Below, one piece after another: positions 1-64,000 of a stretch of DNA of 64,000 bases. The notes under the pieces were generated by a model. It made no database searches and was not told the DNA's origin. It saw nothing but the letters and a program-made list of their open reading frames with translations. This stretch comes from Lepidodermella squamata (lineage: Eukaryota > Animalia > Gastrotricha). Every line of letters begins with the position of its first letter. Position 1 is the first letter of the stretch. The DNA is taken from assembly GCA_047495785.1 (NCBI GenBank), contig JBLDXI010000064.1:62001-126000 (forward strand), written 5' to 3'. The position numbers and the translations under genes were made by a program.

Positions 1-3000
1 TTTTTACTGGATTCTTCGATAAATACGCATCCTTTCCGGGCAATTGGGATGAATGCTTGCACGCCGCACAACATTTGCCGGTGAGTTGCCCATAGTTGTT
101 TAGTTAAGTGTTTAGTGGGTAGTGAGTTCGTTGAATAATTCAAATTTAAAAATTTTCAATATCGCGCGTACCTTCTTCAATTAGTTCGAGATCGCAAAAA
201 GTAGTACCTATTTTTAGCGCAGTTCCAAGAGGAGCTGATAATTTTAGCTATGAGACGTCGCATTCGCCCAAAGTTGATAGCTTTTACTGTTTTTCGCCTA
301 AGGAATGCATGGTTTTACGTAATTTTGAAACAATTTTACCTAAATGATTGAGCTTTGGCTTGGAGAAATGAGAGGCTGCTGCTTTATTCGTACAACGCTT
401 TATCTTCCCCCGTACAACAAGTTTATCTTCGAAACGTACAACAAATAATTAAATATTATTGTATCTCCGAAACGTACAACATTCATTTATTTATTTATTC
501 TCTCCTAAAACATCAATTATCTTCGACCCGTACAACAATATTTAATTGCCGCCGCGTGTTGACCGGCTGCGCCGACGGCGGGTACCACGAGCGGAACGAC
601 GGGTTGGACGACTGCCAGCACGGCTTCGGCTACCTCGAGGACGACCAGGCCTCCTTCTTTGCTGCTGCTCAGCTGCGGGGACGAGCTGCTCGTCCGGCTG
701 TTGGGTCGGCTGCTGCCAAAACTCAGCATTTGGTCGCTCCGGCGACGGCTGGCTGACCAGAGCTGAGGCGACTTTGCTTCGACGGCCGGCTTTTCCGCGG
801 GTGACAAGCGGGACGGAGTGATATTTGGCCGGTATGCGGCTATGATTAGGTAGATGGTGGGCGAGGGCAACAGCGTGCGGACAAGGTTTGCGACGAACAC
901 CGTCCTCACAAGTGCAGGTGATGGCTCCAGGGGCAACAGTCAGAAGGAAGACGTGTTCGAGAGCACACGAAAAATGCTCCAGGTCCGGCCAATTACCATC
1001 TCGACGCGCGCAGAGCACAGAATCAGCAATCGTCTTGTCAGCTGGCACCCACAGCCATTTGTCGTCATCGATTTGATCAAAATGATCCATCCGCCATCAC
1101 AGCACGCGGCGAGTAGTCTGGTTTCCAGCTGCGCAACGCACTAAACAAGTCTTTGTACGCCTCCTCGTTCTCGTGTGACGCAAGACCTGTTGTACGTGAA
1201 AGAGATGAAAAATGTGCGTGTTGTACGAGAAAAAGCTATTTTACCGATTATAATAGGATGGAATTTTCGGTCGGCATCAGTCCCGCCAGCCACAAAGACT
1301 TTGTGCTTCCCTATCACCATTTTATGGGCAGCGTCAACCTGGTAACAAAATTGATAAATAAGTCACAACTAAAATATTCTTATTCTACCTGTAAGCATTC
1401 GATGCGATCAAGTTTGGAAAGCAACAATCGATTTGTAACGAAAAGGCTGAAGCGAGCGGGAATTGAGTTCTGTATGTTGTAGCCGAGGACAAAAGGCTGG
1501 TCCAACAAGTGAGGAATCGTGGATCGTTCGAGACACCATTTTTCCAATTCGCGAGTTCCGAAACCGTGGCCAGTAGCCGGTAGCGTTCCCTCCTCCGCCA
1601 TTTTCTTCTTCAAACGAAGTTTCAACTGCGATATTTGCCGTTTTGTGAACTTGCCGAACCCAGCTGCTTGTAACTCACGAACGATGATTTTCGGGGCCAC
1701 TCGCATGCGCACTGCATTTCGGACGAAATCCTTCACTTCGGTCGTAAATGCCGGCTTACTCGCATCTTTCAATACATGACTGTGTTTCAAACAGCCAAGG
1801 AACTCGCTTTCTCCACCAGATCGAAACTTCATTTGAGCGTGTGCCGGGCACGGGAAATACTTCTTATTGCGATTGAGTGAGCAGAAGAAGTAATACGTTT
1901 TTCCTTCCAACGTTGGTCGCGAGGTTCGAACCCACATCTTCTTATCTTCCCTTTTAACAGCAGCCTTGGCTTCGCGGATCGTGCATCGCGGTATCGTGAA
2001 ATAGGTGTCAAACACATCTTCTTCGACAACAGGGGCCGGAGCATCCTCGTCATCAGCCGGCAGGTTTTCTTCGTCGTCACCGGCCTCGCCGCCGTCATCT
2101 TCATCATCATCATCGTCACCATCATCGCCAGGATCATCATCGTCGGTGTAAGATGACACAGACGCGCCGTCAAGCAGGCTTGAAGACGCCACGGGTGACA
2201 CAAAATTCGATGGGACCATAAAGTGTGCCCCGGCCAACATCAAAACAGTTAGAAGAACAAACGTGAATTTAAAAGCCATATTCAGTCGAATGCTTTGATT
2301 TTGCTTTCGATATTCTTTATTGCCTTTTTATAGCCCCGCCCGCGTGGTTGTATGAAGGAAGGTCACCACGTGGCTTTTATTAATTGAATGTTGTACGAAC
2401 CGAAGATTTTTACTCTTTAAATAATACTGTTGTACGGTTGGGAGACGAAACGTTGTACGATTGGAAGATATTACCCATGCTAAAAATTGTGTTGTACGGT
2501 TGGAAGATTTCTTGTTGTACGCTTGAAAGATGAACGTTGTACGGATAAAGCTTTCCTCAAATGAGAAATGGCTCAAAATTTAATTTCACGAATTTTCTCG
2601 TGATAAAGTTGGGACAATACGCCAAATGTAAAAATTGAAGAAATAATATTAAAAATCCTTCGTATATAAGTTATTTGGGTAAAGTTGTCTCCCCCATTTT
2701 AAAATGATCAAAATATGTCCGGAAATAAGGGAAAAGTGGGGTTTGGCGAAATTTTTGAAATTTCGATAAAATTAAATCTACAGTTTTTGAGCCATTTCGA
2801 GATGACCCGCTTACCTTAATAATTACGTACATTGTTAAAACTCTATTTCAAATTCAGACGCGGCCATTCCAACGCTGCTTTTCTGACGACAGATTCGTTT
2901 CCTGCTCTCCCGTTTCACTCAGCTGCCCACCAAATGTGCGGCTACGTCAATACCTCAATAATTTTCTTTCATTTCTTTCAATAAAGGATGTTATGTTCGA

Positions 3001-4669
3001 ACCACCTCCATTGAGAAATCTAGAATTATGCGCCAGAGGCTTCGGTAATCGCTCTCTTCAGTTTACCTTTATAACCTGTCCCTGTTTTTTAAATTAATTT
3101 GTTAACAGTCCCGCCATCCGTTATCGATGACCAAAAGCCGCACGTTCGCTGTGTGAACAAGCGAACCGGCCGTTTCGTAGCTTGCCGCCGCGAAAGCACC
3201 GGCTGCTCACCAGACATTCCGATGGACTTGCCGCAGCCTTTTGCCAACAAGAAAATGTGCCTGAAAGGGGTGAGTTCTTTCAACAGTTATAGCGAATTCC
3301 ATCTACCTAATTTTCTTCAAAGAATGCTGAGCTCTGCCACGAACCATCTGGCGCTACTTGTCGTGCCTACTGCGATAGCAAATCAAACAGAGTTTGCTTC
3401 GAAATAAGTCATTCTTCCTCTTTAATGCCGTTTCTTAACAGCTATTCGTCTACTCCAAGTCGGCAGACTTTGCGACTAATTTTGAGGATTGCCAACGTAG
3501 CAGATTCACGGTGAGCGATTTTGCTTTTTCGAGTTCTGAAACTGAACGGAATTTGGTGGTTTCGTTCAAATGGTAGAAAGCCCAGGCAGTGATAAATTTC
3601 TTCGTGCTCGAAATATTTAGCGGCAAACTATCTACTGGAAAAGTCTATTCGCGAGGCTCTAGCTGACTCCTTTTAAGGCATTTGAAAGCCGAAGATTGGC
3701 TTAAAATGCATTAAAATGAAGGATAAATTAGGATAGTCCTATTTATCCTTCAAGTGGTCTTCAAGAAGACCACTTTCAGGACTATATCATGTGACGTAGA
3801 TAGGACGCCGCACTCAGAGCACGCCGGTTGACCAAAAGACGAGTTCACTTTTTAGCTCATGAATATTCAGAATAATTTGCAGCGTGAAAATTTAAAATGA
3901 CGGGGCTTCACTCGAATTCGTTTAATAATTGAAATTTAAAAATTTAAAATTAATTAGTTCAAGTTCTAAAGATCGCAAAACGTAGTGTTTTTGGCGCGAT
4001 TTCCGAGATGATATGCATCTTTGGAGATGAATTCAAATGATGGATGGCGGCATCTGCTCAAAATTTGATCAACAGTCAACACAAATAGCACAAGAAAAAT
4101 TGGGGTGGAAAATAATGACATGATTCATCTCATTAAATTTGAAACGGTGAACTTTGATCCTTATTAGTCTGACTTCAGTGTTTCGTGTCCGAAAACCTCT
4201 TAGTGCGGCGTCCTATCAACTCTTGTAATTTGTTTTCCAATAAACCTGATATTTTCAATCAATAAATATTTTCTCGTTAATTTACGTACAGGGTCCGAAA
4301 AACTTTACTGTTGTGGCAACGGATGCTGGGACATTGACGCAAGACGACGCAAGGAGGGCGTGTTCGAACAAGACAAACTCTCGTCTAGCTGTGATCGAAA
4401 CCGAAGCTCAACGACAAGCCGTTTACGCCGCAATGTTAGACGCCTCGGTCATCACTGCTTACATCGGCTTGTCGAAACCTAACGACCAGTGGTTGTGGGA
4501 TGACGGTTCAGCCTATGCTGAGATGCCACCCTGGGTGCCGGGCTATCCATCGGAGGCTAAGATGAACCGATGTGTTGGGCTCGCGAGTATCAATGATGCA
4601 GCTGTGTTTGTGCAGGATGGATCTTGCCTCTCGCCTTCAGCCGACGCTTACATTTGCGAGACGCAGTAA
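1..4669 (+). CDS. Gene A (5' end outside window): Cys-repeat + single C-type lectin-like domain protein, multi-exon
   Basis: In-frame GT-AG exons <1-80, 2858-2935, 2987-3044, 3109-3269 (HVRCVNKRTGRFVACRRESTGC), 3323-3391, 3442-3510 and 4292-4669 (CTLD: ARRAC..LAVIE..YIGL..WLWDDGS..PPW..C..DGSC..YICE). Exon-by-exon paralogy with genes B-K. Confidence 0.85.
372..2558 (-). mobile_element. Mutator-like element (MULE), internally deleted, inside an intron of gene A
   Basis: Inverted terminal arrays of ATCTTC-N4-CGTACAAC (left ~388-540) and GTTGTACG-N4-GAAGAT (right ~2390-2545). GAGG...CCTC ends flanked by AAATGA (366-371, 2559-2564). Encodes MULE transposase parts. Confidence 0.8.
542..2279 (-). 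pseudogene. MULE transposase with internal deletion (WRKY/FLYWCH-like Zn finger, first two catalytic Asp, SWIM finger)
   Basis: YYFFC..CPA..KHSH finger. Spliced exons give VDAAHK..GGTDADRKFHP and SHENEEAY..PRAVMADG, then the sequence jumps near 1090 into the SWIM region CTCEDGVRRKPCPHAVALAH. The CxxH motif and catalytic Glu segment are missing. Confidence 0.8.
3799..4217. mobile_element. Non-autonomous TIR element (MITE) in last intron of gene A
   Basis: GATAGGACGCCGCACTCAGAG at the left end and CTCTTAGTGCGGCGTCCTATC at the right. The internal part resembles 120-290. Confidence 0.7.
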
Positions 4670-4849: not shown

Positions 4850-7535
4850 TGCTTTTCCTCAGGAAGCCGAATTTTTCAAGAGACTTTGCACATAACTGCG
4901 AGCAATGTCTACGTTCCAGTGGCCGAATTCCCAGTCAGAACGGGTTCGAAAATTTCATTCATCAATAGCTCCTAGACCCCGAGCATTTGGGGTTTTACTG
5001 AAAATTGGAAAAGCTGGTTATCATTAACGACTCAATTTTGAATGAATTAACGCGTAATTGTGAGTGATTCAGAGAGCGAAGTAACGCTAGGGATGGTAGG
5101 GATCATCCATCGATCTGTACGGGGAGCTCATTCAAAGACCAAAGGGGGGGCCTTATGTCGATTTTCGCGATCCCTACCAGTTCCGCGGTCCTACTTCGCT
5201 CTATGGAGTGATTACATTCCGAAAAGCTTAGAATTCATTTTTCCAGCAATACCGTCATTTGGGGTTTTTTGGTATGCGTCAAAAAATGACCCCCTGGTTT
5301 TTTTGTTTTTTTACACGTTTCCAAGGGTCCTGATTCGAATGGCACCCGTATTCCGAATAGCCCCATGTGGGGCTATTATTGACACTTATACTGAAAAAAT
5401 GTTGCCTTCCCGCGATAGTACAAGCTTCGGGAGATTTAAAAAACTGCTTGCATCGTTCATAGCGGAAGGATTGAGTGTGCTGCGACTAATGTGAGACGAT
5501 TTTGTCACCGGCGGAGAATTTTTGACACTACATTTTTGATCTCACCTTGCGTATCGCTGATTAATCCCTAGTCTGAGATATTTCGGCCTTTGATAGTTTT
5601 GGGTCCCGTGAGTGCAATATACCCAAATTAATCCGTATCAGTAGCAAAGGTTTGACAGGGAAACGTTTTGAAAGTAGCCAAAAAGCTCAAAAAACCTCCG
5701 TAATTGACACCCCATCTCACAGATGACGTAATCCATGTCAAATAACCGATATGAACCGAATTCCTTTCATATTTGGGTAGCTTAAGTCATCAGCTTTCAG
5801 AAAATATATATTTTTGGTAACCTGGCCTCAGTTTTGATTTCATCAAAAAGTGTGACAGCGACGTGGATCGGTCCATAGACATCTTAATATTAGTAAATAA
5901 GCAAGGACGTGTGGTTTTTTATCACAGTTGTCTATGGCGAGATCATTAAAAGGTCAGCGGTTCGATTCCGCAAGAGTTCACTATTTAGCTTTTTTCACCT
6001 CAATTATTTTTTTACTGCACAAATGTATCATGTTTTTATGCAAACAAACTTATGCTATGCAAATAGATGACTTTTAATTAGATGGTTTTTCCTCAATTTG
6101 CAGTCGAATAATTAATTTTCACTGCTAAATGCATAATCAGCCTGTCACCCGATAAGCCTAATCACAAGTTTATCAAGCCTCTTAAATTCAAAGTCTGCGT
6201 AATTTACCGAGAAACATACCAACAACCCAGCTCATTAGAATATTCAATCATGGTAAAAGAATTACCCTTCAACTTCGCTTTTCGATGGGGCTATTCGGTT
6301 TCAATTAATTTGACAAAAGTATGCATCGGATCGGGGAGTTTCCAATTTTCCAAAGGTCCCAAGGGTCCGTAGATTCAGAAGAAATTGGTCGTGAGCTTTG
6401 AGATGATTTATTCCGGTTCAGGTAATTCAATGCAACACAGGGGTTTTCTTGAGTTAAACTTACACCTGAAAGGTGAGCCTGTAGCTTCAGAACCGTTTAC
6501 TCTTTGAACTCCTACTTTTGAAAGAAAAAGTGTCATCTGTCGAGGTAGCTCCCTGCAAAAATTTATCGACTTTGACTTCACAGATTTTGAGTTATACTAA
6601 TTGAACAAACTTTTTACCGAATAGCCCCGTATTCTGCGATAGCCCCGAATGACGGTACTAGCTTGTTCCAGTGGTCCGAGTACGGGGGGTTCGAAAATTT
6701 CTGTAAACGTAAGGGCCCCCTGTCGATTTTCAAATTTTGGGCTCGATTTAGCCCCCTCAGAGCTGGACATAGCCGGAACCCTGGGAAAACACTTATCTGG
6801 CGATGATAAAAAGTGAAGATGAGCGGCAGGCTGTCAATGAAGCCATGGTCAGTGCCGAAGTTACGAGCACCTACTTGGATTTATCGAAAGGACTAGGCGG
6901 ATGGACGTGGGGCGATGGCAGCGTGTATGATTCGATGCCACCATGGGCGCCAAATTACCCAGAGAGTCAGAGGACTTGCGTCGGCATTGCCACAATTATC
7001 AACAAAGCATTGTACCTCACCTATAGATCTTGTGCTATTTCTTCAGCTTTTCCTTTTATTTGTAAAATAAACTTTCTGAACAATATGTCATATTGAGCTT
7101 GGGCTAGATAAAGTGAAGGTGGATAATCCCTAATTTGAAGATTTGCAAAGCACTTTTAGCCCGAGATTGACGTTTCGTTCGGCTTCTAGGTCACCGCATA
7201 TTTGAAATATTGGCCATAATGGGTCGCGTTCCATTTCCGTTTAATTTTCTAGTTCAAACGACAATGCTTAATTGTCAGAAGTAGGTCAAGTTCGTCTGAG
7301 ATCACAAGACAATTTTAATGAAGCGAACTTTTCACAATGGTTCTAGACAATTTTAAAGCTCGTGCTCAGATACAAAAGATGATGCGTGGTTTTTCTAATG
7401 AGCCCATTTACGTTTATTCAATTGAATTGTTCAACAATTTTCATATTTGATTATTTGTCTATCATTCATTCAAAGTAGCTTTCATTTCACTTGTCATTAT
7501 TTTCATTCGCTATCAGCTCTAATGTTCCTGCGCTC
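4850..7535 (+). pseudogene. Decayed partial duplicate of gene C 3' end plus the upstream region and start of gene D
   Basis: 4860-4990 matches 17533-17680. 6790-7130 matches the CTLD exon and 3' UTR at 17890-18250. 7200-7535 matches 18358-19115. The CTLD exon is split by insertions and has no 5' exons. Confidence 0.85.
5252..6655. mobile_element. Non-autonomous Tc1/mariner-pogo-type element (TA TSD)
   Basis: TA|CCGTCATTTGGGG ... CCCCGAATGACGG|TA with internal GAATAGCCCC repeats. Removing it restores caaTActagcttgttc, similar to gene C (gaTActagcttgttc). Confidence 0.75.
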
Positions 7536-7543
7536 AGTCGATA

Positions 7544-7768: not shown

Positions 7769-9255
7769 GTGCGCGAATTATAGGGTAGGATGGGGGGATC
7801 ATCCTCATCAACGAAAGTCAACCATCCTGGGCTGGTTAAGACAGTATAGTTTGGATGACAGGGCTGCTCCGCTGGTACAAGCTAGCAAGACGTATCCTAG
7901 GCAGTTTACAGAAAAGAGACCGCATTTTCAGCTCATTTTCAGAAAGAATTAAGGTAAAATATTGTCAGCTAAAGCTCGTTTCGCTTGCAGAGGTTAATTA
8001 ATGCACGGGTTAGGAATTTTTAGCGTGAAGGGAGAAGTGTCCTTTGTTGAGCTCTTCGCTGCCAGCCGGATCTGGTGGGGGTGTAGGTTTTCCCATCTTC
8101 TCGATTTATTTCTGGTGGTTTGTTTGTTGATCTTGACAAATTGAACTTCATCCGCCAGTACTGCTGCGGATTGGTTAGATACCATCGTCGCGGCTGATTG
8201 GCTCAAGTTTTCTGCCATGTCGTACCCGGTGGGTAAGGCCTAAAAAGCCAACTGCCGGGTGCCGTATCCACCATCCCGACTACGTTGATCCACACTGGCG
8301 CTTACCTAGACGAAAACAACAAAAGCGAGGTCCTCTCTGTTTTCGTCTAGGTGCGCAACCCTGAGCGCACCGGGCGCTTCAAATATTCTTCACATTATTA
8401 TTCTTTTTTTTTACAATTATCACGTGGGCAGTAATATAGCTCAACAAGGTTTCTTGCCAGTACCTTTCAAGGTAGCTCGCAAACTACTGAAGTTGTCCCC
8501 GAATTTTCAAACACTGGATACTTAGTCCTTGAATAATCATAGGTTATCATAGTGGATCATAGTGGAAAATATGCCGTAACACAGCGCGGAATATTTCCTG
8601 CTAACCCGGGCCGTTTGAGCCAGGATATCACGCTATCCGGGCTGATTTAAACTCAGGTAATGGCTCAAAATTTTGGCAGAACTCACCCCCATTTTCGATT
8701 TTTCCGAGCACGGAAACAAAATTCCCGAAAATACTCAGGCGCCGAAACCTCGTGACCCCAAAAATTTTTATCATTCTGTAATTACGAGAAAATTAACAAG
8801 GTTGAAGGCAGTGTGCGATCTTAGATTCTCGAGCTGCCAGGGATGGGAAAAATTTTTTTTGCTGTTTTTGCCAAGATTACTAGTTATTTTGGCGAATAAC
8901 CGATCGAAGCGAGAACATTTTAAGGATTTTTCACTAAAACACGATTCAGAACCTCTCAAAATTGACGAAATAGGGGGATAAATTATCATTTTGTCGTCTG
9001 GAAGTCGCACACTGGTTGAAGGATTTGCCGCAAAGACACGGGGACAGGCTGAAAAAGCTACAGCAACTTGAATTATGGACACTCCTCCTTTTCCTCAGTA
9101 AATTTATTTTTTCGCGAAAAATATGTTCTTGCTCAGAAAAATCAGCGAAATCGACTTAAGTATAGGTGAGCTCAAACAATATCTTTCCGGAAATATTTGA
9201 ATTGTCAATGAATTATTTTCACAAATAATTGTTCATGCCCAATATTTTAGGATCT

Positions 9256-12099
9256 ATGAATCTGTTTATTTGCCTTAGCCTGTGGCTCCTCGTCGTAGAC
9301 GGGAGATTTATCTCGAAACTATTATATGGCTTGCCTGGTAAAGCGCCGCCAATACCAAGATGGTGGCGCTGCTTCTCCGCTTTGAATAACAAATTCAACG
9401 GCTGTCGAAACGACAGCAACCAATTCGAGTATAAGGTTAACATCATCGTTAATTGTGCTAATCAGTAACGTCTTTTCTGTTTCTAGTCCGTCATTCCGTT
9501 TACACTTTACGATACTTGCGTTGATGGGGTGTGTTTGAAAATATTTTCCAATAGCTGAGGGAACCCTCCGGCTACAGTCGCCAATAATTTGATTTGATTT
9601 TTTTGCTATGAAGAACGTGAAACTCTGCTACGACCATGTGGAATTCAGCTATCGATGCATTGAAGGCATATGGCAGTGCAAGAAAACCAACGAAATCCAG
9701 GTTTGTGCAGGAAGAAAAAAGTGTGTGTGGCTTTGTTTATCATTTCCATTTTGCTATCAATTTGCAGGCTGGATACTACAATACAGGAACCTTCAGACGA
9801 AATTATGCTAACTGTATTGCTGCCTCGAAAAAATCACCCGTGAGTGAAACAAATGATAGCTAGGTTTATTAGTATTGAAATGTCTGATAATACATAACTT
9901 ATGTATTATCAGACATATGTAACACTCTTCAATATCGTCACTATCGTCACTATCGTTCACTCTTCAATTAATTACAATTCCCAGCATAAAGTTATTTTTT
10001 TTCAAAATTGTCTTTCGATTTCAGTTGAAGCCATTTGAACGGTGCTTTTCGGGCGGCAAATTTGTTTCCTGTTTTCCTCTTTCCCTCGGCTGTCCAGCCC
10101 ATTTGGTGAGTCGAACAGCCACGCCCGAACTGCTTTCACATTTTTTTAAAGGACGTTAACGACGATCTACCTACCTACAATAATCTAGAATCATGTTTGA
10201 GCGGTGCAGGTAATTTCGGCAAAAACATATTCACCTATTTGAACTCTCTTTACCATTATGGCTTTTAATCACAATTTTACAGTGCCACAAGCTGTTATCG
10301 ATGACCAAAAGCCGCACGTACGCTGTGTGGATAAGAAGTCGGGTAATTTTGCGGGTTGCCGCCTCAAAAGCACAGGCTGCTCACCTGATGTGGAGATGTA
10401 CGCGCCGCGGCCTTTTGCAAACAAGAAAATGTGTCTGAACGGGGTTAGTACACTTTGAAACTGTTATAAACAACAATAAGTTACTTGTGATTTTCCAATG
10501 AAATACAACGCCAACTTTTCTGTGTACATTTCTGTTTAGAATTCTGTGAAATGCAACACAACATCATCCGGCCCAACTTGTGGTTCTTTCTGCCAGAATG
10601 CCTCAGATATAGTTTGTTTATCAAATAATGTATTTCTACCTTTCTTTTCTACCGAGATATAAACAGATCTTCGCCTTATCGGATTCGAGAGACTTCGCGA
10701 CTAATTATCAGCGGTGCCGACTTAGTGGGAATATTGTGAGTGACGTTATTTCTTTTTATTCCAAAACTACCAAAAAAACCATGAATGTAAAATTATGCAA
10801 TTACCTTGTATTCCGGATATATGTCGAGTAGATGAATAACAACAAGCTTCTGTTTCTACGCAACAATATTAATTTCTTTGTTCTTTTCGTGTAGCCTCGT
10901 TCGGCCGATCGGTCACTTAGTCACTATAATGCTTCTTCGGGCGTTTGTTGTGAAATGTAAAGGTTCCTTGGGAATAATACTGTATGGACTCGACATTAGC
11001 CACTTTTCTGCTCGACAGGAAAAAATCAACAATTTTGATGCGAGAAAATCAAATGAAAAATGCGTTTTTTGCATTCTATCAAAATCACCATTTTTACGCT
11101 TCCGCCCATTATTGAGCCAAAAAATATAAGTTTACCGGAGGAGCCATATACCCTCGCCATTATTTTAGTTATTGAACAGGTCTTTACAGATATAGATACA
11201 GCTAATCAAGAGCTTTGCGATGTTACCGAATACAATTTGTTATGAAATTGTTTAGGCATTATTATAATATATTTGATTTTTTGCAGAGAAAGTAATTACT
11301 TTGAGGAAAGAATTGAGGAAAGATACATGACTTTTCATCTCAATGAGAAGGTTCATGAATATTCTCTTATTTTTTTCTTCGTAAATCAGTGTAAATAATG
11401 GGCTCTATTTTAGAAATTTCCACTCTTGCTGTTTGAAATATTGATTTGGCTTTGTAGAAACAGATTCTACATCTTAGTCTCGATATACAGTGTCAAAGTA
11501 CAAATACTTGTTGCTGGGTCGCTCGCGATAGTGGGGCTGGTCGGGTTGGTGGGTGGGCCTATTAATCAATTGATAGAATCGCGTGCTGCCAAGCCCCATT
11601 GATCGAGTATAGTTGGATTATTCAGTTTTTATTTTATTCATTGTACATTGTAAAAAATTATGCGTATTCTACACTAATTTCTTATAACTATCATGATGTT
11701 TACACGAGATTATGGTTTTTATTCTTGTAGAAACGTCCGAAGACTTTCACTGTTGTAGTGAATGACAAAGGAGTAACGCAAGATGAAGCCAGAAAGGGTT
11801 GTTTGAAGAAGCCAAACTCAAAACTGGCGGTAATCGAAACCGAAGCTGAGCTCCAAGCTATTCATGCAGCGATGTTGGACGTTGGGCGCGACTATGCAAT
11901 GATCGGCTTTACGAGAATTGACGGCGAGTGGTCGTGGGATGACAGTGCAGTTTCCCCCTATTTAGGCATCCCACCCTGGTTGGGCGAGTTGAAGCGATGT
12001 GTTGGGGTGTTGGAATTGGCCGGCGACTTGTTTTTGTTCGATCAAGCATGCAATTCGACGGAAACCCGCGATTACGTTTGTGAGACTCGCCCATTTTGA
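9256..12099 (+). CDS. Gene B: secreted Cys-repeat (x5) + single CTLD protein, multi-exon
   Basis: Signal peptide MNLFICLSLWLLVVDG, WWRCFS module, HVRCVDKKSGNFAGCRLKSTGC exon, terminal CTLD exon ~11731-12099 (MIGF..WSWDDS..PPW..YVCE). Confidence 0.85.
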
Positions 12100-16246: not shown

Positions 16247-18178
16247 ATGAATCTGCCTTTCTTCGTTGTCATCTGGTTTCTAATCGGGTACTTACCTTGT
16301 TATTCATCAGCGCAATGGAAGCGTTGCTTCTCAGTTTTCGATAACGGCTATTCCGGCTGTCGAACAAATTGCACAATCACGCAGCAATACCAGGTTATTT
16401 TTCTCATATTCTAGAAGTTCTGGACATGTTTCGATCTACTTTAGTTTGGAAGATCATTTGCCGACTCCGTGAAATGCAAAATATGCGTGAGTACGTACAT
16501 CAACTCAATTCCTTTGTTGAAGATTTGAATGACTGAATGACTTTACCCAAGAACGCAAGGCTTTGCTACAACCACGTCTCGATAACTCTACGCTGCGTTC
16601 CAGGCAATGCTAAATGCGACAACGTCCGCGAGCTCGATGTGAGTCCTGTTTCTGAATCTCGAATCTCTTATTACGACATATTCAATACAGGTTAGAACTT
16701 TTAATCGCAAAAAATTCGGACTAAATTGGAAAGACTTCGTGCATGGTAATAAATACCATAGGTTTTGACCGTGAGGTGTGAATCAAATTGGAAAATATCA
16801 GTTAGGGATCACCACGGTAAATTATTTAAAATTAAAATTCGGGCGAATTGTGGTGATCTCTAACTGATTTTTTACAATTAAATTGGAAAGATTGCCGGGC
16901 AGCCCTAGCTGCGTTTCCGGTTGGTTTTTCATACCTGATACCTAATAGGGATTTTTTTATGTTGGCTATTTCAGTCTCGGAAGTTCAATCGCTGTACCAT
17001 CGGTGACTCAATCGTTACGTGTGTTCCTGTTCCTAATACCACCTCAACATGGTGAGTCTGCGACTACCTATTCGCCCATTGTTTTCTACATAATGGACAG
17101 AAAATGAGCTTCAATCCGATTCACAAGTAATCTTGCCTGAATGGCGCTGGTTTTTTGAAAGCACCTTTCATTTCACTCATAATATTTCCAAATTTCTGAA
17201 CAGCCGATTACCCTATGAGCAATAAGCCGCACATTCGCTGCTTCAACGCTAAGAACAAGCAGTTCGAAAGGTGCCGCCCGAAAACCACAGGTTGCTCGCC
17301 TGATATCGAACTGATTTCACTGCAGCCATTCGTTGACAAGTTTAACTGCCTCACTGGCGTAAGGTTCAAAGTTCGATTCGATCATGAGCTTAATTTACAT
17401 GTTTTCAAGGTAGCTGTTCGCTGTAAAACGCCGTCTCGCAAGATTTGCAACGGCTTCTGCCAGCAGGACTCACAAATCGTGATGCTTGGGCCTAATTATG
17501 AAACTTGTTGTGATTACTCTAGCTTTTCCACAGGAAGCCGTATTTTCAGACTCGAGAGACTTTGCAGATAACTATGAGCAATGTCTGCGTTCCAGTGGCC
17601 AAATTCCCAGCTTGGGGTCAGGACGGGTTCGATAATTTCATTCATCAATAGTTCCCAAGCCCTAAGCCTTAGCATTTGGACATATAAGCATCAGTGACTG
17701 AATTTAAAATGGATTAACACGAAATTGACCGCGTAAATTACAGGAAACTATAGAAAAATCGCCCCTATCTTGTGTTATTTTGCAAATATTTTAAATTTTC
17801 TAGCGTATCAAAAAGTTTGATCATGCCCCATCGTACGAATTCGAGTCGGATCGCATGCAATTGGACGCGATACTAGCTTGTTCTGAGTGGGAGAACACAT
17901 CTCTGGCGATGATAAAGAGTGAAGATGAGCGGCAGGCTGTCTATGAAGCCATGGTCAGTGCCGAAGTTACGAGTGCCTACTTGGATTTATCGAAAGGACT
18001 AGGCGGATGGACGTGGGGCGATGGCAGCGTGTATGATTCGATGCCACCTTGGGCGCAAAACTGCCCGAGGCCGAGGACATGCGTCGGGATTGCCAGAATT
18101 ATCGACAAAGCATTATACCTTGTCGATGGATCTTGCAATCTTCCTTCGGCCTTTGCTTTTATCTGTGAAACCTTGTGA
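16247..18178 (+). CDS. Gene C: secreted Cys-repeat (x5) + single CTLD protein, multi-exon
   Basis: Signal peptide MNLPFFVVIWFLIGYLPCYSSA, WKRCFS, HIRCFNAKNKQFERCRPKTTGC, CTLD exon ~17804-18178. Exon 4 carries an insertion (see findings). Confidence 0.8.
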
Positions 18179-19063: not shown

Positions 19064-22000
19064 ATGATGGCTTGCCATTATTTTACTATGCTATCAGTTC
19101 TCATGATTGCGCTGATGGGCCAGGGAGTGTTAGCAGCGCGATCGCATGTGCGATGCTACTCACAGCTGAACAACCGGTTCAAATCCTGCAACGAAGCTTC
19201 CCAAGGCTGCGATGCACTCCGCGAGTATCAAGTGAGCTTTTCTATTATAATGATATCAGTTCTAAATACTGATTTCCCCTAACAGGATAATCAGGACTTC
19301 GCGAACGCGAGTGATTGCAATAAAGGCGTAAGATTTAATTACACATGATCACTGATGATTCCTTACAACGATTTTTGGCAACAGAGCGTTGTTATGTGCT
19401 ACAAATTCGAGGTTCTTACTCCGTGGTGCGTGCCTGGAAACATCGGATGCGACGAGGTGAACGAAATGACGGTATGTTGTTTTGAACATTTTTCTGCGAG
19501 ATTTTTCGCCTCACCACCATTCATGCGGATTTCCGGGCCCTGGAATTTTATCAAACTCATAGGCCTAAATACAACAAAATCAATCTTTGTCCCATTTTTC
19601 GGGTTCGATTCGTCGTGAGTTGAGGAGTCCATCGAAGTCCCATAGTCATAGCACTCACACCTGAGAAGCATTTAAGTCCCTAAGATGAGTCAAGTCCACC
19701 TTAACAAAATGAATTTAACACCAGGAAAAAAATCACCCTAATTAGGGCGACGAAAAATTAGCTTGTGAAATCCTCCCAATTAGGGCCTCAATTAGGCGTG
19801 AGTATCCTCATTCCCCATTTTTCATAATTTATCGGAATTCATGCTCAAAAAGTGAAGTCATTCCATGAACATGATTTAATTGTGTATTAATTACGAAATT
19901 TGACGATTTTCATTGCAAATCTTGAGATGGGTACTATTTGAAATGTTGCCACGTAACAGAATAAGGCGCTCACTCATGTCTAACGCATTCCATTTTCAAT
20001 TGATCAGTGATACATTTATTTTAGTTCATTTTGCCTACATTGTATTGCTATCGATTCAATATGATTTACTATTATAAGTGAAAAGTTACACAAGAACCAA
20101 CAAAGGGAAAACAATGGGATTCCAGAATTAGATATCTAATTTTTTGGCTCCTCCAGGTGTATACTTTTTGTTCTTGTATTATTGCTCGCAATAATTAAGC
20201 CCGGGAATAAGGGTCATTTAGAATTTTGGAATTAAATTATTTCCGAGAAATTTTCGAAACTCAGTTTCCAATGAATTCCGATACCGTAACTGGGTTCATG
20301 TCTTAGGTAGATGAAACAGGGTGCATTTTTTCTGGTGAATGCAGCCGAGATGGCTATTATTGCTAAAAACCTAGGTTTTGCCTCACTCACTCATATTTTT
20401 TGCCTCATCCAGGAGCTGAGGTGTTTTCTAGCACCCAGCCGAAGGAACGTCCTGTGGATTTTCCAGCCAATTTCTGATTGGGGTCCCGGAGCTGCATCCC
20501 TTTACTTCACACTCTATTTGCCTCTATGAAATTTTTCCGCTGATTTCGAGTCCAGACTAGAGATGTTCCGGTTCCAAAAAACCGCCGGTTCTAACCGGGT
20601 TGAACCCGGTTTTTTCGAACCGAAACCGCCCGGTTCCATTTTTTTCCAGCTTCAAAAACCGCCGGTTCGCGGTTATGCTATACATAGCTGGACCAGCAGT
20701 AATTTGTGTTTTCCATGGTAGATATTCCAGGTTTCACTATGTGTTACAGCTGCATTATTCAGTGCTGTCACTATTAGCTTAGGCTTAATTAATGGAGGTA
20801 GCCATGTGGGCAGAAAAAGGTATGCACATTTTTTCGAAAAATTGGATTTTCGCATGAATTTAAACGTTAATTCCTTTTTACCAATGATTGCCACAACAAA
20901 CTAACGCTGCCATTCGATTCCTCGTGAAATTTTGGTCTAGACGAAGTATCACAAAAGGTATTTGAGAAAAAAAATAAAATTCAGAGCATCCCGGCAATAA
21001 AGCAATAAAATAATTTATGACCCCTAATTATCTCGATAACCATGATAGCTATAAAAATTCTGAAAAAAGATTCAGAGTCCCCGCCCCAATTTCTGAGGGG
21101 GATTTCGACATGAAAAGAAGCGGTTTTGCCGTTCTTCTTTGAAAATTGAAATACAGAGGAAATTTCCCGCTAGCTTAATTGGGATCGGAAGTAATAATGA
21201 TTTCACGATATCTCGGGTTTCATTTTTCCAACAATGCTAAAAATTTATATTCCAGGGTAGAATTTCACGCTGAAGACACTGGGACCGTTTGTTTCTTTGT
21301 CTGAGCAACGGATTATCGAGTATCGATTATTGGCGATTGATCATGAATGATTAATTTTATCTTAAATAGCGGAACCCGCGGTTAACCGCCGGTTAAACCG
21401 AAATAACCGGGTTACACCTCAAAAAGTTCGGAACCGAACCGAACCGAACCGGACAGATTAAAAATGGAACCGGAACATCTCTAGTCCAGACTGCTATTAG
21501 TCCCAAGGTTAATATGGGTTGAACTTACACCTCGTTCGAGGAAATAAATTTCAGGCCCGAAATAAATGTCAGATGGCGACAGTAAGATCATTAAGCACTT
21601 AGAAAGGTCAGGGACTAATTTGTTCGATCAATACACGTAGAATCCCAGGGAAATGTATGACATTTTGGTTACCCAGGCAGTTCCTTCTTGGTTCGGATAA
21701 ATATATGCAAGTCCCTTTATGTAAATGTCAGGGGTACATAAACGTTCGAAAAAATAAATGTCATGCTTTTTTTCGGGCAAAACTGTTTATATCAATCTCT
21801 TTTTCCAGCTCCTTGAATTTGGGAATTCAACATCGAATTACAAGCGATCATTCAGCGAGTGCGAATTGCGAGTAGATCAGTTCGAAGTGAGATTTTTCAT
21901 ATTTCCCTTTTCAAGCGCAACATTCCATCCTTAGAATCAACGATTTCGCCGTTGTACTACCAAAAACTCATCGGTTAAACTCAAAACATGCGTACCAGAT

Positions 22001-37274: not shown

Positions 37275-39169
37275 TCACGAAAACTTCTCGCACAAGACTT
37301 GATGCGTTCTATCTGTGCAGGAGTACGCTTCAAAATAAAATCCGGATAGGTTCTCGGTATAATGAATACCAGCGCAGCCATCAGGGTTCAGTCCAAGCCA
37401 CTTCGATTGAGCGTACGGAGCATCAGAGCCATCGTCCCATTTGAGAGCACCGTTTTGCCGGACAAGAGCGACCCAAACATAAAAGCTTGGGTCCAGCACT
37501 TGCAAGGCCGCAGCCATCTCAGCGTCTGACCGAATCGTCGCTATCGCAGCATTCTTTTCAATGCATTTCAACGTGGCGGCGATTTTGTCGCCTCCGTCTT
37601 TACCAAGGTCCTCCATCGAGTAACTCTTGACAACAGCCTTGCAACTGTCTTCGGTCGTATAGGCGACATCGGCCGGCCTTCTCAGCTGGGTTGCCGCATT
37701 GCAGTCTGTTGACTCGGTTACGCAATGACTCGTCCCGTCACTGACGTCGACGCAGCGGAAGTAAACAGACTTTAAAATATGCAAGAGTAAATTTCATCAG
37801 TACTGTGACATAGGAACAAATATAATTGATAGCCAACTCACAGGGGGCGATACATCCTTCATACACTTGTCATGATTCAATTGAAAGGACTGTAAGCCGG
37901 AGAAAAGCTTGTCCTGTTATCGAAAAACATGTGAACGCGCATACTTATCGCATCAACTAAACCGGGTTGACCGGAGCTTTGCCTGTGTTTGGTCTTGGGG
38001 ACAGGTTGCGTAGCAAGACAGTCGTCCAGATGAATCTTCGCACGAAACGGCATTCTGTCAAACAAGACCAACCTAATTAATTGTCAAAACAGAAAAAGAA
38101 TGACTTACTCCTAGCATGCATGCCGCACGGTTGATGTAGACTTTGTTTGAGTACTGCTGAGTCTCATTGCTGGCAAAACAGCCGGGGCTTTGCGGACGGC
38201 AGTCGTGGAATTTGCGAGATGTCGAGTCAAAACAGCGGACGTGAGGCTTTTCGCTAATCGGAACTTTGACTGAAATTCATGAAAAGTCATTAAAATCGCT
38301 AAGGACATTATTAAAGTTCAAAGGTGATTTCGCCGTTTTCCCCAAGTTTTCACACTCATATAGCAGTAATAACGTACCTAATCCATTGGTGCAAGACGTG
38401 AGATTGGGATACAGATTTGAATCAGTTGGCTGCTGGGGAAACTAATCAAAGAATAAAATAATCAAATGAATAACCATTCAGAAAGCTGAGAAATAGCTCA
38501 CCCAGTTTTCAGGGCATTGATATGGGTCGGGCACACAAGTTTTGATGACGGTTTCCGACATACAGCGCCTGAATTTCAAAGTCTGAAACATGACGTTATG
38601 CCAAACTTCCATTCAGTGCTTGAATTCTCACCTCGAATGCAGCTTTCTTTTTCTCGCATTCATTGAGGTTGTTTCTCAAGCTGAACGGCGGCTTTGCAAG
38701 GTCAAACCAAAATGTCTGAAGCAATGAGTTTGATGGGCAATATCAATTGTTGATGAAAATTCTTACATTCACATCACCTGGGTTGTTACAGCCGACGTTT
38801 CCAGGTACGCAGAATGGGGTGAGAGCCTCGTATTTGTAGCACATCCTGGCATTCTAGAGACAAATTGAAATTGGAATAACAAAAGATGCCATCAAGTTGC
38901 TGATGACTTAACAGACCCCGGTGTTGCAACTGCCGGTTGATCGGAAACTCGTTCCCCACTATTCGAAGAGCATGCTTAAACTATCTTGAAGAGAAATTTG
39001 ATTCGTGGAAAACCTGGTAATCTTTGAGCGGATCACAGCCATCGGGTTCGCAGCTAGTGAATCGATTGCTCTGCTGCGAGAAGCATCGAGCCCAGTCACC
39101 CCCGTAAGCCGAGTCGCATGATGCGAGCAGAAGTGCCAAAAGCACAAAATTACAGTAAAAACCAGCCAT
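37275..39169 (-). CDS. Gene H: secreted Cys-repeat (x6) + single CTLD (CTLD1 type)
   Basis: MAGFYCNFVLLALLLASCDS signal, WARCFSQQSNRF, terminal exon SVYFRCVD..WVAL..WDDGS..VLCEKFS. Confidence 0.88.
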
Positions 39170-40632: not shown

Positions 40633-43600
40633 CTAAAAATTCTCGCATAAGACGCTGCCTGGATAGGCATTACATTGAGTTGATGAATAGTAATAACCGT
40701 CGGATGGCACGTTATCTTCAACGGTATTACAGAAATGAATGTAAGCACACCCATCAGATACAACCCCATTCCATTGTGTTGCGTCGTAAGTGTAACTCGA
40801 TCCGTCATCCCATTTGAATACGCCGTTTTGCCGGGTGAGAGCGACCCAGACAGGCCCAGCCTGCGCAGCCTTCAGCGCTTGTCTAGCAGCGGCTAGCTCA
40901 GCGTCAGACCTAATCGTTGCCAATGTAGCATTGTTCTCGACGCATTTGGACGCGCTAGCATCTTTGAGGCCCACAAAAACCACCACCGAGTACTTCTTAG
41001 TCGCATTCTTGCAAGCGTTCTCGTCTGGATAGGCGATATTGACCGGAATTCGAAGCTGGATTGCCGCATTGCAGCCTGTCGCCTCTGCAACGCAGTGAAC
41101 TGTACCGTCGCTGTTGTCGACACAACGGACATAGGACGACTGCAAGTAAAAATCGAAATTTTCATTAAACAGCAACAAAGTGCAAAGGAAGTAATTCCGG
41201 ACTCGAATTACAGAAGATGTCAAATCCTTGGTATTAAATGCAACTTATTTCTTTGCTAAGAGGATATTATATATTGATGTATCTCAAATGAAATGTGCAA
41301 TTTAAAGTGTTTAAACACGAACTCACAGGAGGCGCAGGTGGTGATATTTCGTTGATGCACTTGTCATGGTTTAGTTGGAACGTCTGCAAGTCTGAGAACA
41401 GCTTTTCCTGTAGTAAAATAACCATTTGAAAAGTACCACAACAACTAGGCCATGTGTTCAGCCTTACCTGCGTATATCCCCGAGGGCATGCTGCGTAGCA
41501 AGACAGCTTTTGCGATGCATCCTTGCATGAAACAGCATTCTGCTTAAAATACGATTGCAATTAAAAGGGGCGATTTTTCAAATCACAACTCACTCCAAGC
41601 AGGCAAGACTCGCGATTGATGTACACTCTGGTCGAGTACTGCTGAGTCTCGTTGTTTGTGTTACAGCCAGTGATCTGCGGTCTGCAGTCATTGAACTTTC
41701 CGCTGGTCGAATCGAAGCATCGGACATGAGACTTTTCGCTATCCGGTGCAGCGACTGAAATAACAATAAGACATAGCTGTAATTCCATGCTCAGTTTCAC
41801 TCACCAGATCCATTGGTGCAAGACGCGAGATTGGAATACACAGTCGATTCAGTGGCCTGTGAAAGAGAAATCAGAATGTCATCACCACGACAGAATGAAA
41901 TAGATGTCACTCGCCAAGTTGTTCGGGCAAGAGTAAGGATATGGAACACAAGTTTTGATAACGTTGTTTGAAGTGCAACGCCTGAACTGCAAATTCTAGA
42001 AAAATAGAAAGTAAAAAGTAATCAAATACAATTTTCTGAAGGTTCAGAATTCTTACATTGAACACAGCTCGTTTCTTCTCACATTCGTTGAGGTTGAATC
42101 TCAGGTTCAGCTGTGGGGTCGGACTTCCGAACCAGAACAACTAAAAGATAACAAAAAATGATTTCTTAATAATTTTGAAATTTGAAATTTTGAGAAAGTG
42201 CGCGAGAAATTTTGCAGCCCTGATTTGAAGTCTATCTATGCTCAATAGGGCCGATGCAGGATTCTTTGTTCACCCTTAACGAAATCGAGTTGCCTGTGTA
42301 AGTTTGAAATGCCTGCGTAATTATCGCTAATTCAATGCTCTTCGCAGATACTAAAGGCTTCGACTAAAGGATAAGTGAGCGAGCGCAGCGAGCTTAATAT
42401 GGTGAAAATGCAAGGGGGAAGCAATTTTCTCGTTCTGAAAATGCAGTCCTTGGTGTTGGTACCATATGACTGATACCTGAAGTTACTGAGTGCAATTCAC
42501 TTTGCTTTCACGGCTTTCAAGTTTGAACCAGGGGGGATGACTTATTTTTTTGGGGGCGCGACTTCTCGCGAAGAGGGGGTAAACCCCCTCATCCCTCCCG
42601 CTACTTCCTACACTGATAAAAAGATTTGCGGTAAATTGTGAATTTAAAATTTAGCAATAAAAATATGCATGCGCAACAGACAACAGACAACACTGTAACA
42701 GATAGGATCTTTCTCTAGTGAATGTATTCGAGCTGCTATTGCAAAAAGGGCGGCACGCGACCACTTTTATGCCACCCAAAGTCCTAACCGCCCATTATAA
42801 TTTTAATAATAAAACAAAAAAGCCACACCCAATACCTCTTTCTAATTTCTTGAATTTCTGCTCATAAATACTAGAAGCGGCCATCTATCTATTGATACCA
42901 GGCACACCTATTGTTCCCTTATGGGTAATTTTCTCGCTAAAAAGGGCGCTAAAAAGGGCTATATTTGATGATTTTGGGAAAAAAAATTAAAAAAAAATAG
43001 GTTATTCACGTCGAGAATTTTCTCTGTCCGGCGATATAAAATTTGTCTGGTAAATAATGTATTTTGATTTTCCGATTTTATCTCAGCTCGAAAACTTATT
43101 ATTTGCTAGAATATTAGTATGGTATAACATGAGTAAAAAGTTCATTTCTGAACGGAGCCGACCGAGATTTACGAATCGAAACGAGCCGGAGGCGAGTTGA
43201 GATGAGTAATTCGAGTGCACTGCCGAAAAAATTGGGAAATTGAAAGAAATTATTTACCGTCGGATAGTAGGAAATTAGAAAGATCACTAAGAACTAGATT
43301 ACAAAGATATATAATCTTCAACATCGGACCTACCGTCATTTCACTCTGTTTGTTACAGCCGATGTTTCCAGGCACGCAGAACGGGGTCAGCGCCTCGTGT
43401 TTGTAGCACATCCGACCATTCTATAAGTATATAAATCCTATATAGTACAATCGAAAATAAATTGCAAAATTAAACCCACCCCTCGGCTACAAGCGCCTGG
43501 TTTTTGAAAAATCTGGCCCAACTATCAATAGGAAAAATAAAGAATTGGCAGAATATGAATTTATCGAAACCAGCCTGGTATTCATTGAGTGGATCACAGC

Positions 43601-43748
43601 CATCGGCAGCTGGGACGCAGTTGGTGAATCGGTTGCTGAACTGTGAGAAGCAGCGAACCCAGTTCAACGGCTTCTTGCCAACAGCAGTCACCTCGATAGA
43701 CGCCAGCATCATCAGCGGCAAAAGCAGAGTGTTGCAATGCGCAATCAT
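40633..43748 (-). CDS. Gene I: secreted Cys-repeat (x6) + single CTLD (CTLD1 type)
   Basis: MIAHCNTLLLPLMMLASIEVTA signal, NWVRCFSQFSNRF, HVRCFDSTSGKFNDCRP, terminal exon 40633-~41139 with CTLD. Confidence 0.88.
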
Positions 43749-58711: not shown

Positions 58712-60678
58712 TCACGTAAACTTCTCGCACAAGACTTTATACAATTCTTGGGTGCAGGAGAAAAGTTGAAAGTAATATCCGGGTGGGTTTTTTCTGCCGA
58801 AATAACGGATTCCAAGACATCCATCGTCGATCATTCCCATCCACTTCGATGCAGCATACGATGCAACGGAGCCATCGTCCCATTTGAGAACCCCATTATG
58901 CCGAGTGAGATCGACCCAGGTATAATAGAGCGGGTCCAGCACTTGCGCGGCTGCATCCAGCTCGGTGTCTGACCTAATCTTCGCAATCGTAGAATTTCTT
59001 TCGACACATTTCGACGCGCCTGCGATTCTGTCGCCACCAACCGCACCCAGGTCCTCCATCGAGTAACTCTTGACAACAGCTTTGCAACTGTCTTCGTTCA
59101 TGTAGGCGACATCGGCCGGAGACCTCACCTGGGTTGCCACATTGCAGTCTGTTGACTCGGTTACGCAATGACTCGCCCCGTCACTTACGTCGACGCAGCG
59201 GAAATAAACAGACTACAAAATATGAAAGAATTCATTTCGACGGTACCATTACAATGGTTATTTTCCAGAAAACGATCACCTTATTGCCTATACCTAATAC
59301 TGATACTGAAACATAGGAAAACATATAACTGATAGCAAACATACAGGGGGCGATACATCCTTGATACACTTGTCGTGGTTCAATTGAAAGGTCCGCAAGC
59401 CGGAGAAAAGCTTTTCCTGTAATCGAAAAAAACAAAAAAAAATCACATCAACTGAACCGGTTTGAAAGAGGCTTTACCTGTGTTTGGTCTTGGGGACAGG
59501 TTGCGTAGCAAGACAGCCGTCCAGATGAATCCTCGCACCAAACGGCATTCTGTCAAACAAGACCAACCTTATCGATTACTGTAAAAGAAAAAGAATGACT
59601 TACTCCTAGCATGCATGCCGCACGGTTGATGTAGACTTTGTTCGAGTATTGTTGAGTCTCATTGCTGGCAAAACAGCCGGGGCTTTGCGGACGGCAGTCG
59701 TGGAATTTGCGAGATGTCGAGTCAAAACAACGGACGTGAGGCTTTTCGCTAATCGGAACTTTGACTGAAATTCATGAAAAGTCATTAAAATCGCTAAGGA
59801 CATTATTAAAGTTCAGAGGTGATTTCGCCGTTTTCCCCAAGTTTTCACACTCATATAGCAGTAATAACGTACCTAATCCATTGGTGCAAGACGTGAGATT
59901 GGGATACAAAGTTGAATCAGTTGGCTGCTGGGGAAACTAAACAAAGAATCAAAGAATCAAATGAATAACCCTTCAGAAAGCTGAGAAATGGCTCACCCAG
60001 TTTTTGGGGCATTTGTACGGGTCAGGGACGCAAGTTTTGATGACGCCATTCGACATGCAGCGCCTGAATTTCAAAGTCTGAAATGACATGAAGTTTGCAC
60101 GTGTCAAACTTCCATCCAGTATTTGAATTCTCACCTCGAATGCAGCTTTCTTTTTCTCGCATTCGTTGAGGTTGTTTCTCAAGCTGAACGGCGGCTTTGC
60201 GAGGTCAAACCAAAATGTCTGAAGCAATGAGTTTGATGGGCAATATCAATTTTGGATGAAAATTCTTACATTCATATCACCTGGGTTGTTACAGCCGACG
60301 TTTCCAGGTACGCAGAATGGGGTGAGAGCCTCGTATTTGTAACACATTCTGGCATTCTAGAGACAAATTGAAATAGGAATAACAAAAGATGCCATCAAGT
60401 TGCTGATGACTTAACAGACCCCGGTGTTGCAGCTGCCAGTTGATCGGAAACTCGTTCCCCACTATTAGAATAGGAACGCTTAAACTTTCTAGACCTGAAG
60501 AGAAATCTGATTCGTGGAAAACCTGGTAATTTGCGAGTGGATCACAGCCATCGGGTTCGCAGCTAGTGAATCGATTGCTCTGCTGCGAGAAGCATCGAGC
60601 CCAGTCACCCCCGTAAGCCGAGTCGCATGATGCCAGCAGAAGTGCCACAAGCACAACATTACCGTGAAAACCAGCCAT
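58712..60678 (-). CDS. Gene J: recent duplicate of H, Cys-repeat (x6) + single CTLD
   Basis: MAGFHGNVVLVALLLASCDS; exons, several introns and ~680 bp upstream (to ~61358) nearly identical to H (to ~39846); terminal exon ends VLCEKFT. Confidence 0.88.
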
Positions 60679-62448: not shown

Positions 62449-64000
62449 TCACGAATGGTCCTCGCACAAGACCTTATTTGCTTTGCTACTACAATCATAT
62501 TGTAAAAACATGGGTGGGTTTTGTTCGTCGAAACTGCTGATAACAGCACAGCCATCGTTCTTTCCAATCCACTTCGAAGCAGCAAACGGAGCATCGGTGC
62601 CATCGTCCCATCTGAGGGCACCTTTTTGCCGCACGAGACCGACCCAGGTGTTCAAGGTCGAGTCAAGCACTTGTGAGGCGGCTGTAAGCTCAGCGTCTGA
62701 CCTAATTTTTGCAATCGAAGCATTCCGTTCAACGCATTTCAACGTTGCGGTCCATTTGTCGCCTCCGTCATCGCCCAGGTCGTCAACCGAGTATCGTTTG
62801 ACAACAGCCTTGCAACTCTCCTCGTCTTTATAGGCGACATCAGCCGGGATTCGAAATTGCGTAGGCGCCTGGCAGCCTGTCGACTCGGTTACGCAATGAC
62901 CCGACCCGTCACTTATGTCGACGCAGCGGAAGTAAACAGACTGCAAATAATTTAACAGTTCCTTTATTTTCTAACTTTTTGTAAGCAATTTAACTAATTT
63001 TTTAAATTAAACCTGCCGCGAAAATAATCCGCCTTTTTGCGATTGAATCAAAGAAAAAATGGAATTTTTCCCGGAGGGAACCCGAAATAGCCCATTAGTG
63101 GCGGCTGCTTCGGTATTTTTTGGTATTTTACCCGGTTAGAACCCCCTTCACGCGCATCATCCAGCGCTGGAACGACCTGCCCAAGACCGTGTTTCCAGAC
63201 ATTATTGATCCTCATTTATTCAAAAAATCTGTGAACGACCTATGCCTAGTTTTTTAACATCCGAAAACTGACCGAAAATTCTTCGTAAATAAAAAAAAGA
63301 ACAAATTTATACATCCTTTTTCAATCCCAAAAGTGATAATACTCCCGAAGTGTCTACGTTTTGAAGTTTCGGAACCATTTTCAGTGAATATTCTTTGCTT
63401 GCATTACTTATGGGAGTGCTGTCTACGTTGGTATAAGTATATTTAACAGACACACAGAAGGAACTAACGAACTTACAGGGGGCGTTATATCCTTGAGGCA
63501 ATTGTTAAAATTAAGCGTAAACGTCTGCGAGCCGGAGTACAACTTCACCTGCAATAGAAAAAATGAGTTGATAGTTGAAAAACCGATCATTCGTTTAGGT
63601 TTACCTCCGATAGACCTTTAGGACAAACAGCGCGGCAAGACAGGCGGTTAGATGAATCCTTGCACGAATAGGCGTTCTGTCAAAAACCACATTAATTGCT
63701 GAAATAGAAAGGATTATTACAACTTACTCCGCGCATGCAAGTTGCACGGTTGATGTAAACCTGGGTCGATGACGGCAGAGTTTCATTGCTGGCGAAACAG
63801 CCCGGGCTTTGCGGTCGGCAGTCGTTGAATTTGCCAGTGTTTGAATCGAAACAGCGGACGTGAGGCTTTTCGCTAACCGGAACTGTAACTGAAATTCATA
63901 AAAAAAATACCCGGCATTGAATCGCAACCGAATTTCCACTACGAATAACGCACTCATTCCGTTGGTACAAGACGCGAGATTTGGATACAAATCTGAATTT
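62449..64000 (-). CDS. Gene K (5' end outside window): H/J-type Cys-repeat + CTLD protein
   Basis: Exons for HVRCFDSNTGKFNDCRP, NAYSCKDSSNRLSC and terminal exon SVYFRCVD..WVGL..WDDGT..VLCEDHS. Confidence 0.85.
63143..63298 (+). mobile_element. 5'-truncated LINE (CR1/L2/Jockey-type) 3' end in an intron of gene K
   Basis: FTRIIQRWNDLPKTVFP..LFKKSV matches the LINE ORF2 C-terminal R....WN.LP....FK motif, followed by AATAAA/poly(A). Possible AGAAC TSD. Confidence 0.7.

Follow-up and report, generated by a model that had tools for sequence, protein, structure and literature searches.

Clustered genes for predicted secreted C-type lectin-like proteins with chains of an unrecognised four-cysteine module in the gastrotrich Lepidodermella squamata

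Eleven related loci lie within a 64,000-nucleotide (nt) stretch of the gastrotrich Lepidodermella squamata genome (GenBank assembly GCA_047495785.1, contig JBLDXI010000064.1, positions 62,001 to 126,000, forward strand; hereafter the window, numbered from its first letter). They raise the question of what kind of protein they encode, and whether the small four-cysteine module repeated in their products belongs to any known domain family. A sequence-only reading had proposed a lineage-specific family of secreted proteins in which an undescribed disulphide domain is joined to atypical C-type lectin domains. The analysis reported here makes it rather probable that the family arose by tandem duplication and encodes soluble secreted proteins with C-type lectin-like domains (CTLDs) and a lineage-restricted four-cysteine module lacking a detectable relative. 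Each protein would start with a cleavable signal peptide, continue as a chain of three to six four-cysteine mini-domains, each of approximately 45-57 residues, and end in one or two CTLDs.

Gene F was modelled by hand, and the model was recovered by a purpose-written protein-to-genome spliced aligner. Its introns are all GT-AG and 52-119 nt in length, the splice acceptor sites are not strongly nematode-like, and the frame closes with a TAG stop codon. The signal peptide is followed by six modules, as had been expected after splicing, then by CTLD1 and CTLD2 (Table 1). The Cys spacings of modules 1-6 (10/6/17, 9/6/26, 8/6/16, 10/6/19, 8/3/22 and 9/6/19) fit the proposed consensus R-C-x(8-10)-C-x(3-6)-C-x(16-26)-C. 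Three peptides quoted in its support, beginning WVRC, HIRC and FVRC, were located on the plus strand at 30115, 30991 and 31449 (together spanning 30115-31551), and paralogue copies of them were found on the same strand at 33389, 34593 and 35272 (span 33389-35272). As to the remark that Phe or Tyr usually precedes the last Cys, five of the six module types have an aromatic residue 6-7 positions ahead of it. The first exon of module 2 shows 81% mean column identity over seven paralogues.

Mapping of the window by tblastn with F and by spliced alignment revealed 11 family loci (A-K) and one decayed remnant, and the eleven-gene cluster described earlier is indeed F plus ten paralogues (A-E and G-K), which, like the remnant, follow the exon plan of F. 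The models of D-J (seven, of which six are complete) are open, have consensus splice sites and conserve intron positions and phases; those of A-C, which have diverged, are less secure. Both CTLDs are found in D, F and G, only CTLD1 in H, I, J and K, and only a CTLD2-type domain in A, B, C and E. The family diversifies through tandem and segmental duplication and through domain loss, which yields these three architectures. Since H and J share 2 kb of DNA at 92.6% identity, introns and 5' flank included, with CTLD exons 79% alike, their likeness suggests that a segmental duplication or a gene conversion took place recently. GC-AG introns were observed at conserved family positions on the minus strand of H (37914-37982) and I (43522-43574 and 41857-41914); the paralogues of H and I carry GT at these sites, and the adjacent H and I frames stay open.

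The family cluster is real and beyond chance. The full cysteine pattern occurs contiguously 18 times in the six-frame translation of the window, and in 100 random sequences from a dinucleotide model its mean count was 0.12 and its maximum 2. A looser regular expression (R-C plus two further Cys, with wider gaps) gave 46 matches, on both strands and throughout the window. For the modules, the ratio of nonsynonymous to synonymous substitution rates (dN/dS) was 0.18 when F was compared with G and 0.15 when F was compared with E, and for the CTLDs it was 0.25-0.36; such low values on the predicted frames indicate purifying selection. Exons remain similar among the paralogues, whereas introns diverge.

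The products of all nine genes from B to J open with Met, a hydrophobic core and then small residues, with maximum Kyte-Doolittle values over 10 residues of 2.3-3.4; gene A yielded no signal-peptide exon. No membrane-span-like segment was found in D-J, in which no 19-residue window past residue 30 exceeds 1.5. The claim that every complete gene has a signal peptide and no transmembrane segment is borne out by the signal-like N-termini of B-J and by D-J, none of which has a segment that looks membrane-spanning, and is not confirmed for gene A. These features support the view that the family consists of soluble, probably secreted, proteins without a membrane anchor.

Exons of F, E, H and A score 28.6, 28.4, 32.8 and 35.9 bits against Pfam Lectin_C (PF00059), all above its gathering score of 22.6 bits, and among these are the single-exon copies orthologous to CTLD2 in A and E. 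An AlphaFold2 (AF2) model of module 6 plus CTLD1 of gene F had a mean predicted local distance difference test score (pLDDT) of 86.2 and a predicted template modelling score of 0.82. Foldseek with this model returned 384 PDB matches at E ≤ 0.001, and all 50 of the 50 listed were CTLDs, with thrombomodulin, dectin-2, CD23 and mincle at the top (E approximately 3e-6); the matches begin at about residue 45 of the model. Both CTLDs of F, and those of H-K, retain the four core cysteines (pairs C1-C4 and C2-C3). Gene D is the exception: its CTLD1 (24128-24613) has lost the disulphide partners C1 and C4 together, and the remainder is open and alignable.

Calcium-dependent carbohydrate-binding C-type lectins are defined by EPN or QPD together with WND at calcium site 2. 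Reading of the alignments showed that these canonical motifs are absent from all family CTLDs: in CTLD1, QPQ or LNP stands immediately before DGC and YNS or AYS replaces WND, and in CTLD2 the motif sites hold SPD, MPN or YPS, plus LRD or LKD. The domains have the Lectin_C signature and the CTLD fold, and were correctly called atypical because the calcium-site-2 motifs are missing. Since the canonical calcium and sugar site has been lost, they would most likely bind their ligands independently of calcium or in a non-sugar way.

In several respects the family resembles the clusters of secreted invertebrate CTLD genes such as Caenorhabditis clec: signal peptide, one or two CTLDs, no anchor, tandem clustering and an EPN/WND sugar site that is often lost. 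It differs from them in its partner domain, as the usual CUB, CW/PAN-3, vWA and EGF domains are absent here and a four-Cys module unrecognised by Pfam takes their place. Cys-rich, lineage-specific CTLD partners are common in invertebrates. Mannose receptors and selectins likewise chain small disulphide modules to extracellular CTLDs, but their FNII, ricin-type and CCP domains have other Cys spacings and would match Pfam, whereas in the present proteins, which appear soluble, the modules precede the CTLD and are predicted to be alpha/beta.

The module chain may serve as a rigid, disulphide-stabilised stalk, or as an additional binding surface, that presents the CTLD head, and the proteins may have an immune or surface-coat function. 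An unlikely alternative, although the best of those considered, is that these proteins help to build a secreted matrix (cuticle, eggshell, mucus or surface coat) instead of serving in recognition, with the modules acting as cross-linkable spacers. Soluble, Cys-rich and modular products, a lost sugar-binding motif, and selection that is purifying rather than diversifying over all domains would all suit a matrix role. The models, however, contain no low-complexity, mucin-like or collagen-like stretches, and fast gene turnover with domain loss is more typical of families that face the environment.

To return to the proposed family of CTLD proteins with a lineage-restricted module, it was the module for which the database searches gave no relative. 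An alignment of 18 single-exon copies (types 4 and 6; 46 columns) has invariant residues at R4, C5, C16, C23 and C43. Against Pfam, these 18 modules and exon pieces of types 1, 2, 3 and 5 gave nothing better than E 0.09, with no match to sushi/CCP, EGF, FNII, CBM14 or any other Pfam-A family. A profile of the module had no match among PDB sequences at E up to 10. Against 1.84 billion representative proteins it gave two matches, P0001 and P0002, at E 1e-7; both were rejected as spurious because they are repeat-rich, lack the four-Cys frame and match only in 12-14 short partial stretches of the profile. Scans of metagenomes with two alignments revealed no relative, and a search of the ESM Atlas by features gave chance-level rows only. 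Homologous-protein searches used two queries, the 186-amino-acid (aa) exon that encodes module 6 and CTLD1 and a 125-aa CTLD exon from gene E; neither found anything among proteins of 0.55-1.75 times the query length. Rfam had no match in the whole window, and a literature search returned nothing relevant.

AF2 folded module 4 with a pLDDT of 87.0, placing strands at residues 2-7, 13-18 and 28-30 and a helix at 40-45; module 6, in a separate job, showed the same secondary-structure elements. The predicted module fold is a beta-hairpin, a third strand and, at the C-terminus, a short helix; two disulphides presumably stabilise it. With the module model, Foldseek found no credible neighbour in PDB or the AFDB clusters, and an ESM Atlas search by shape again gave chance-level rows. 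VIA-align against 48,161 PDB representatives placed MbtH-like proteins first (Z 2.5-4.0). These share a three-stranded sheet followed by a helix over approximately 40 aligned residues, but they are cytoplasmic bacterial proteins without disulphides and are 8-15% identical; as their Z lies below the tool's own meaningful level, the match was taken as a common small arrangement and not as kinship.

The module could also be a very diverged or truncated form of a known small disulphide domain, such as a three-finger/Ly6 domain cut down to its first two fingers, CCP/sushi, CBM14 or a Kunitz-like domain, which we regard as less probable still than a matrix role. The three-finger idea arose from the Cys spacing: the hydrophobic-R-C-F/Y start, the first beta-hairpin and the four-Cys spacing resemble the beginning of Ly6/uPAR domains and, in short three-finger toxins, cysteines 1 to 4. 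Foldseek often misses small domains, and one Kunitz variant reached Z 2.3 in VIA-align. Against this, the 18 copies match nothing in Pfam or among the PDB sequences at E up to 10, VIA-align gave no three-finger, Ly6, CCP or CBM14 chain at Z ≥ 2, and none of these folds appeared in the Foldseek searches of PDB or AFDB. The three-finger candidate was rejected for these reasons, and the module itself has only four Cys where three-finger domains have eight to ten, no C-terminal CC-x4-CN tail, and its Cys4 in a predicted C-terminal helix, unlike the all-beta three-finger and CCP folds.

Profile-profile comparison with hhalign gave a probability of 91% for module types 1 versus 4, 48% for types 4 versus 6, and less than 20% for all other pairs. 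Modules 1-2-3 had been thought to resemble modules 4-5-6 as a duplicated triplet; only types 1 and 4 proved alike, and the triplet was rejected for pairs 2-5 (1.6%) and 3-6 (4.2%) on both hhalign and Cys spacings. That origin falls away from the sequence-only reading; its proposals of secreted-type proteins with no anchor, of atypical CTLDs and of a module that the resources searched do not recognise are supported. All six types nevertheless have an R/M-C start and a short gap between Cys2 and Cys3. Four of the six carry an aromatic-x-N-x3-C tail, and four of the six a phase-0 intron 4-7 residues after Cys3; the introns within and flanking the modules are phase 0, with one exception. On the common Cys frame and start, and on the tail motif and phase-0 intron position present in most of them, the six types may be read as one old family despite weak sequence likeness.

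Two read runs were also examined: X1, DNA of the same organism, and X2, RNA according to a guessed label. X2 contains short pieces that match exons 10 and 12 of F at 100% identity, together with contigs of higher depth that are approximately 85-90% alike and match module 2 of F, the likeness beginning no more than one base from the exon 3 acceptor (30354-30355 in F, 33647 in G). One contig of 1187 nt carries pieces like modules 1, 2 and 3 in that order. These pieces and contigs fit spliced transcripts of F and its paralogues, for which they are weak and indirect evidence. An origin of the gene models as artefacts, or of the loci as pseudogenes, for which the lack of directly junction-spanning reads and the decay in A-C and the remnant (missing signal peptide, lost Cys, unplaced exon) could be cited, is very improbable given the seven open models (six complete), whose splice sites fit the consensus and whose intron phases are conserved, the module dN/dS of 0.15-0.18, the 18 pattern occurrences where 0.12 were expected, and X2 pieces confined to exons, including the identical ones in F.

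Several points nevertheless weigh against the reading of these genes as a secreted CTLD family with a lineage-restricted module. No joint listed from the reads falls on an intron predicted for F or G, and the sole RNA-labelled run consists of exon-limited fragments and paralogue-like contigs. The two exon queries did not find even themselves, and the genome's own open reading frames (ORFs) appear to be absent from the protein databases, so that annotated relatives in close species could be missing as well. Whole-unit Pfam, homology and folding runs covered module types 4 and 6, and the intron-split types 1, 2, 3 and 5 entered the Pfam search as exon pieces. A profile and a model of 46 residues have limited search power, and the AF2 alignments comprised 6 and 18 paralogues, all from this window.

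A bolder form of the same explanation, which we advance tentatively as somewhat less likely than not, is that the module represents a genuinely new disulphide-rich fold of extracellular proteins, born in this lineage, spread by exon shuffling and used as the scaffold of a lineage-specific secreted recognition system. A new fold would enlarge the repertoire of extracellular domains by a so far undescribed unit, in a large and actively duplicating family that standard annotation would call just 'C-type lectin' or leave unnamed. The family offers a clean case of the birth, multiplication and shuffling of a small disulphide domain. The practical weight is modest, Cys-rich partners of this kind being common in invertebrates.

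Table 1. Family loci in the window and domains of gene F
Feature	Positions	Strand	Content
Gene A	2858..4663	+	Modules 3-5 and one CTLD2-type CTLD; Lectin_C E 1.3e-8
Decayed remnant	4863..7093	+	Piece like second half of module 5 (4863-4943), partial CTLD (6773-7093)
Gene B	9235..12096	+	Signal peptide, about five diverged modules (module 1 without Cys3), one CTLD; uncertain model
Gene C	16247..18172	+	Signal peptide, about five modules, one CTLD; exons for modules 2b-3b not placed
Gene D	19064..26038	+	Signal peptide, six modules, CTLD1 (without Cys1 and Cys4), CTLD2; three introns >1 kb
Gene E	27529..29458	-	Signal peptide, five modules, one CTLD2-type CTLD; C-terminal end approximate; Lectin_C E 3e-6
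Gene F	30037..32572	+	12 exons, 597 aa; signal peptide, six four-Cys modules, CTLD1, CTLD2
F module 1	30112..30297	+	Exons 30037-30201 and 30256-30297; phase-0 intron between Cys3 and Cys4
F module 2	30355..30592	+	Exons 30355-30441 and 30509-30592
F module 3	30649..30845	+	Exons 30649-30729 and 30794-30845
F module 4	30965..31125	+	Single exon; copy used for AF2 folding
F module 5	31182..31381	+	Exons 31182-31253 and 31310-31381
F module 6	31434..31592	+	Shares exon with CTLD1
F CTLD1	31593..31991	+	Lectin_C E 2.6e-6, 28.6 bits; Foldseek PDB CTLDs at E ~3e-6
F CTLD2	32101..32569	+	Exons 32101-32256 and 32309-32569; partial Lectin_C match on second exon
Gene G	33305..36467	+	13 exons, 596 aa; architecture as F
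Gene H	37275..39169	-	433 aa; signal peptide, six modules, CTLD1 only; Lectin_C E 1.2e-7
Gene I	40633..43748	-	446 aa; signal peptide, six modules, CTLD1 only
Gene J	58712..60678	-	435 aa; signal peptide, six modules, CTLD1 only
Gene K	62449..64000	-	5' end past window; visible part is modules 3b-6 and CTLD1

Other features were observed among and beside the family genes. Between B and C, a piggyBac-type transposase is present on the plus strand as two open pieces (14194-15552; Pfam DDE_Tnp_1_7, E 8e-31 and 5e-18). A fragment of a Helitron helicase-like N-terminal domain (54520-54882, minus strand; PF14214, E 1.5e-11) sits in a 14-kb stretch (44-58 kb) that is free of family genes. Upstream of gene A, two ORFs lie on the minus strand: one of 182 aa (545-1090), which contains a SWIM zinc finger (E 1.7e-4) and may belong to a MULE-type transposase, and one of 299 aa (1383-2279) with a signal-peptide-like start, a long acidic Asp/Glu/Gly run and no Pfam family. 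Between F and G, the depth of run X1 rises to approximately 27,000 at 32800-32999, compared with 100-400 nearby, and many loose ends and opposite-strand joints occur in X1 at 32791-32871; the segment 32800-32999 looks like a high-copy short inverted-repeat element. Finally, the plus-strand regions 51726-52200 and 61385-61900 have near-identical translations, including a common 21-residue peptide ending CRNCCSA, and therefore appear to hold copies of one repeated element.

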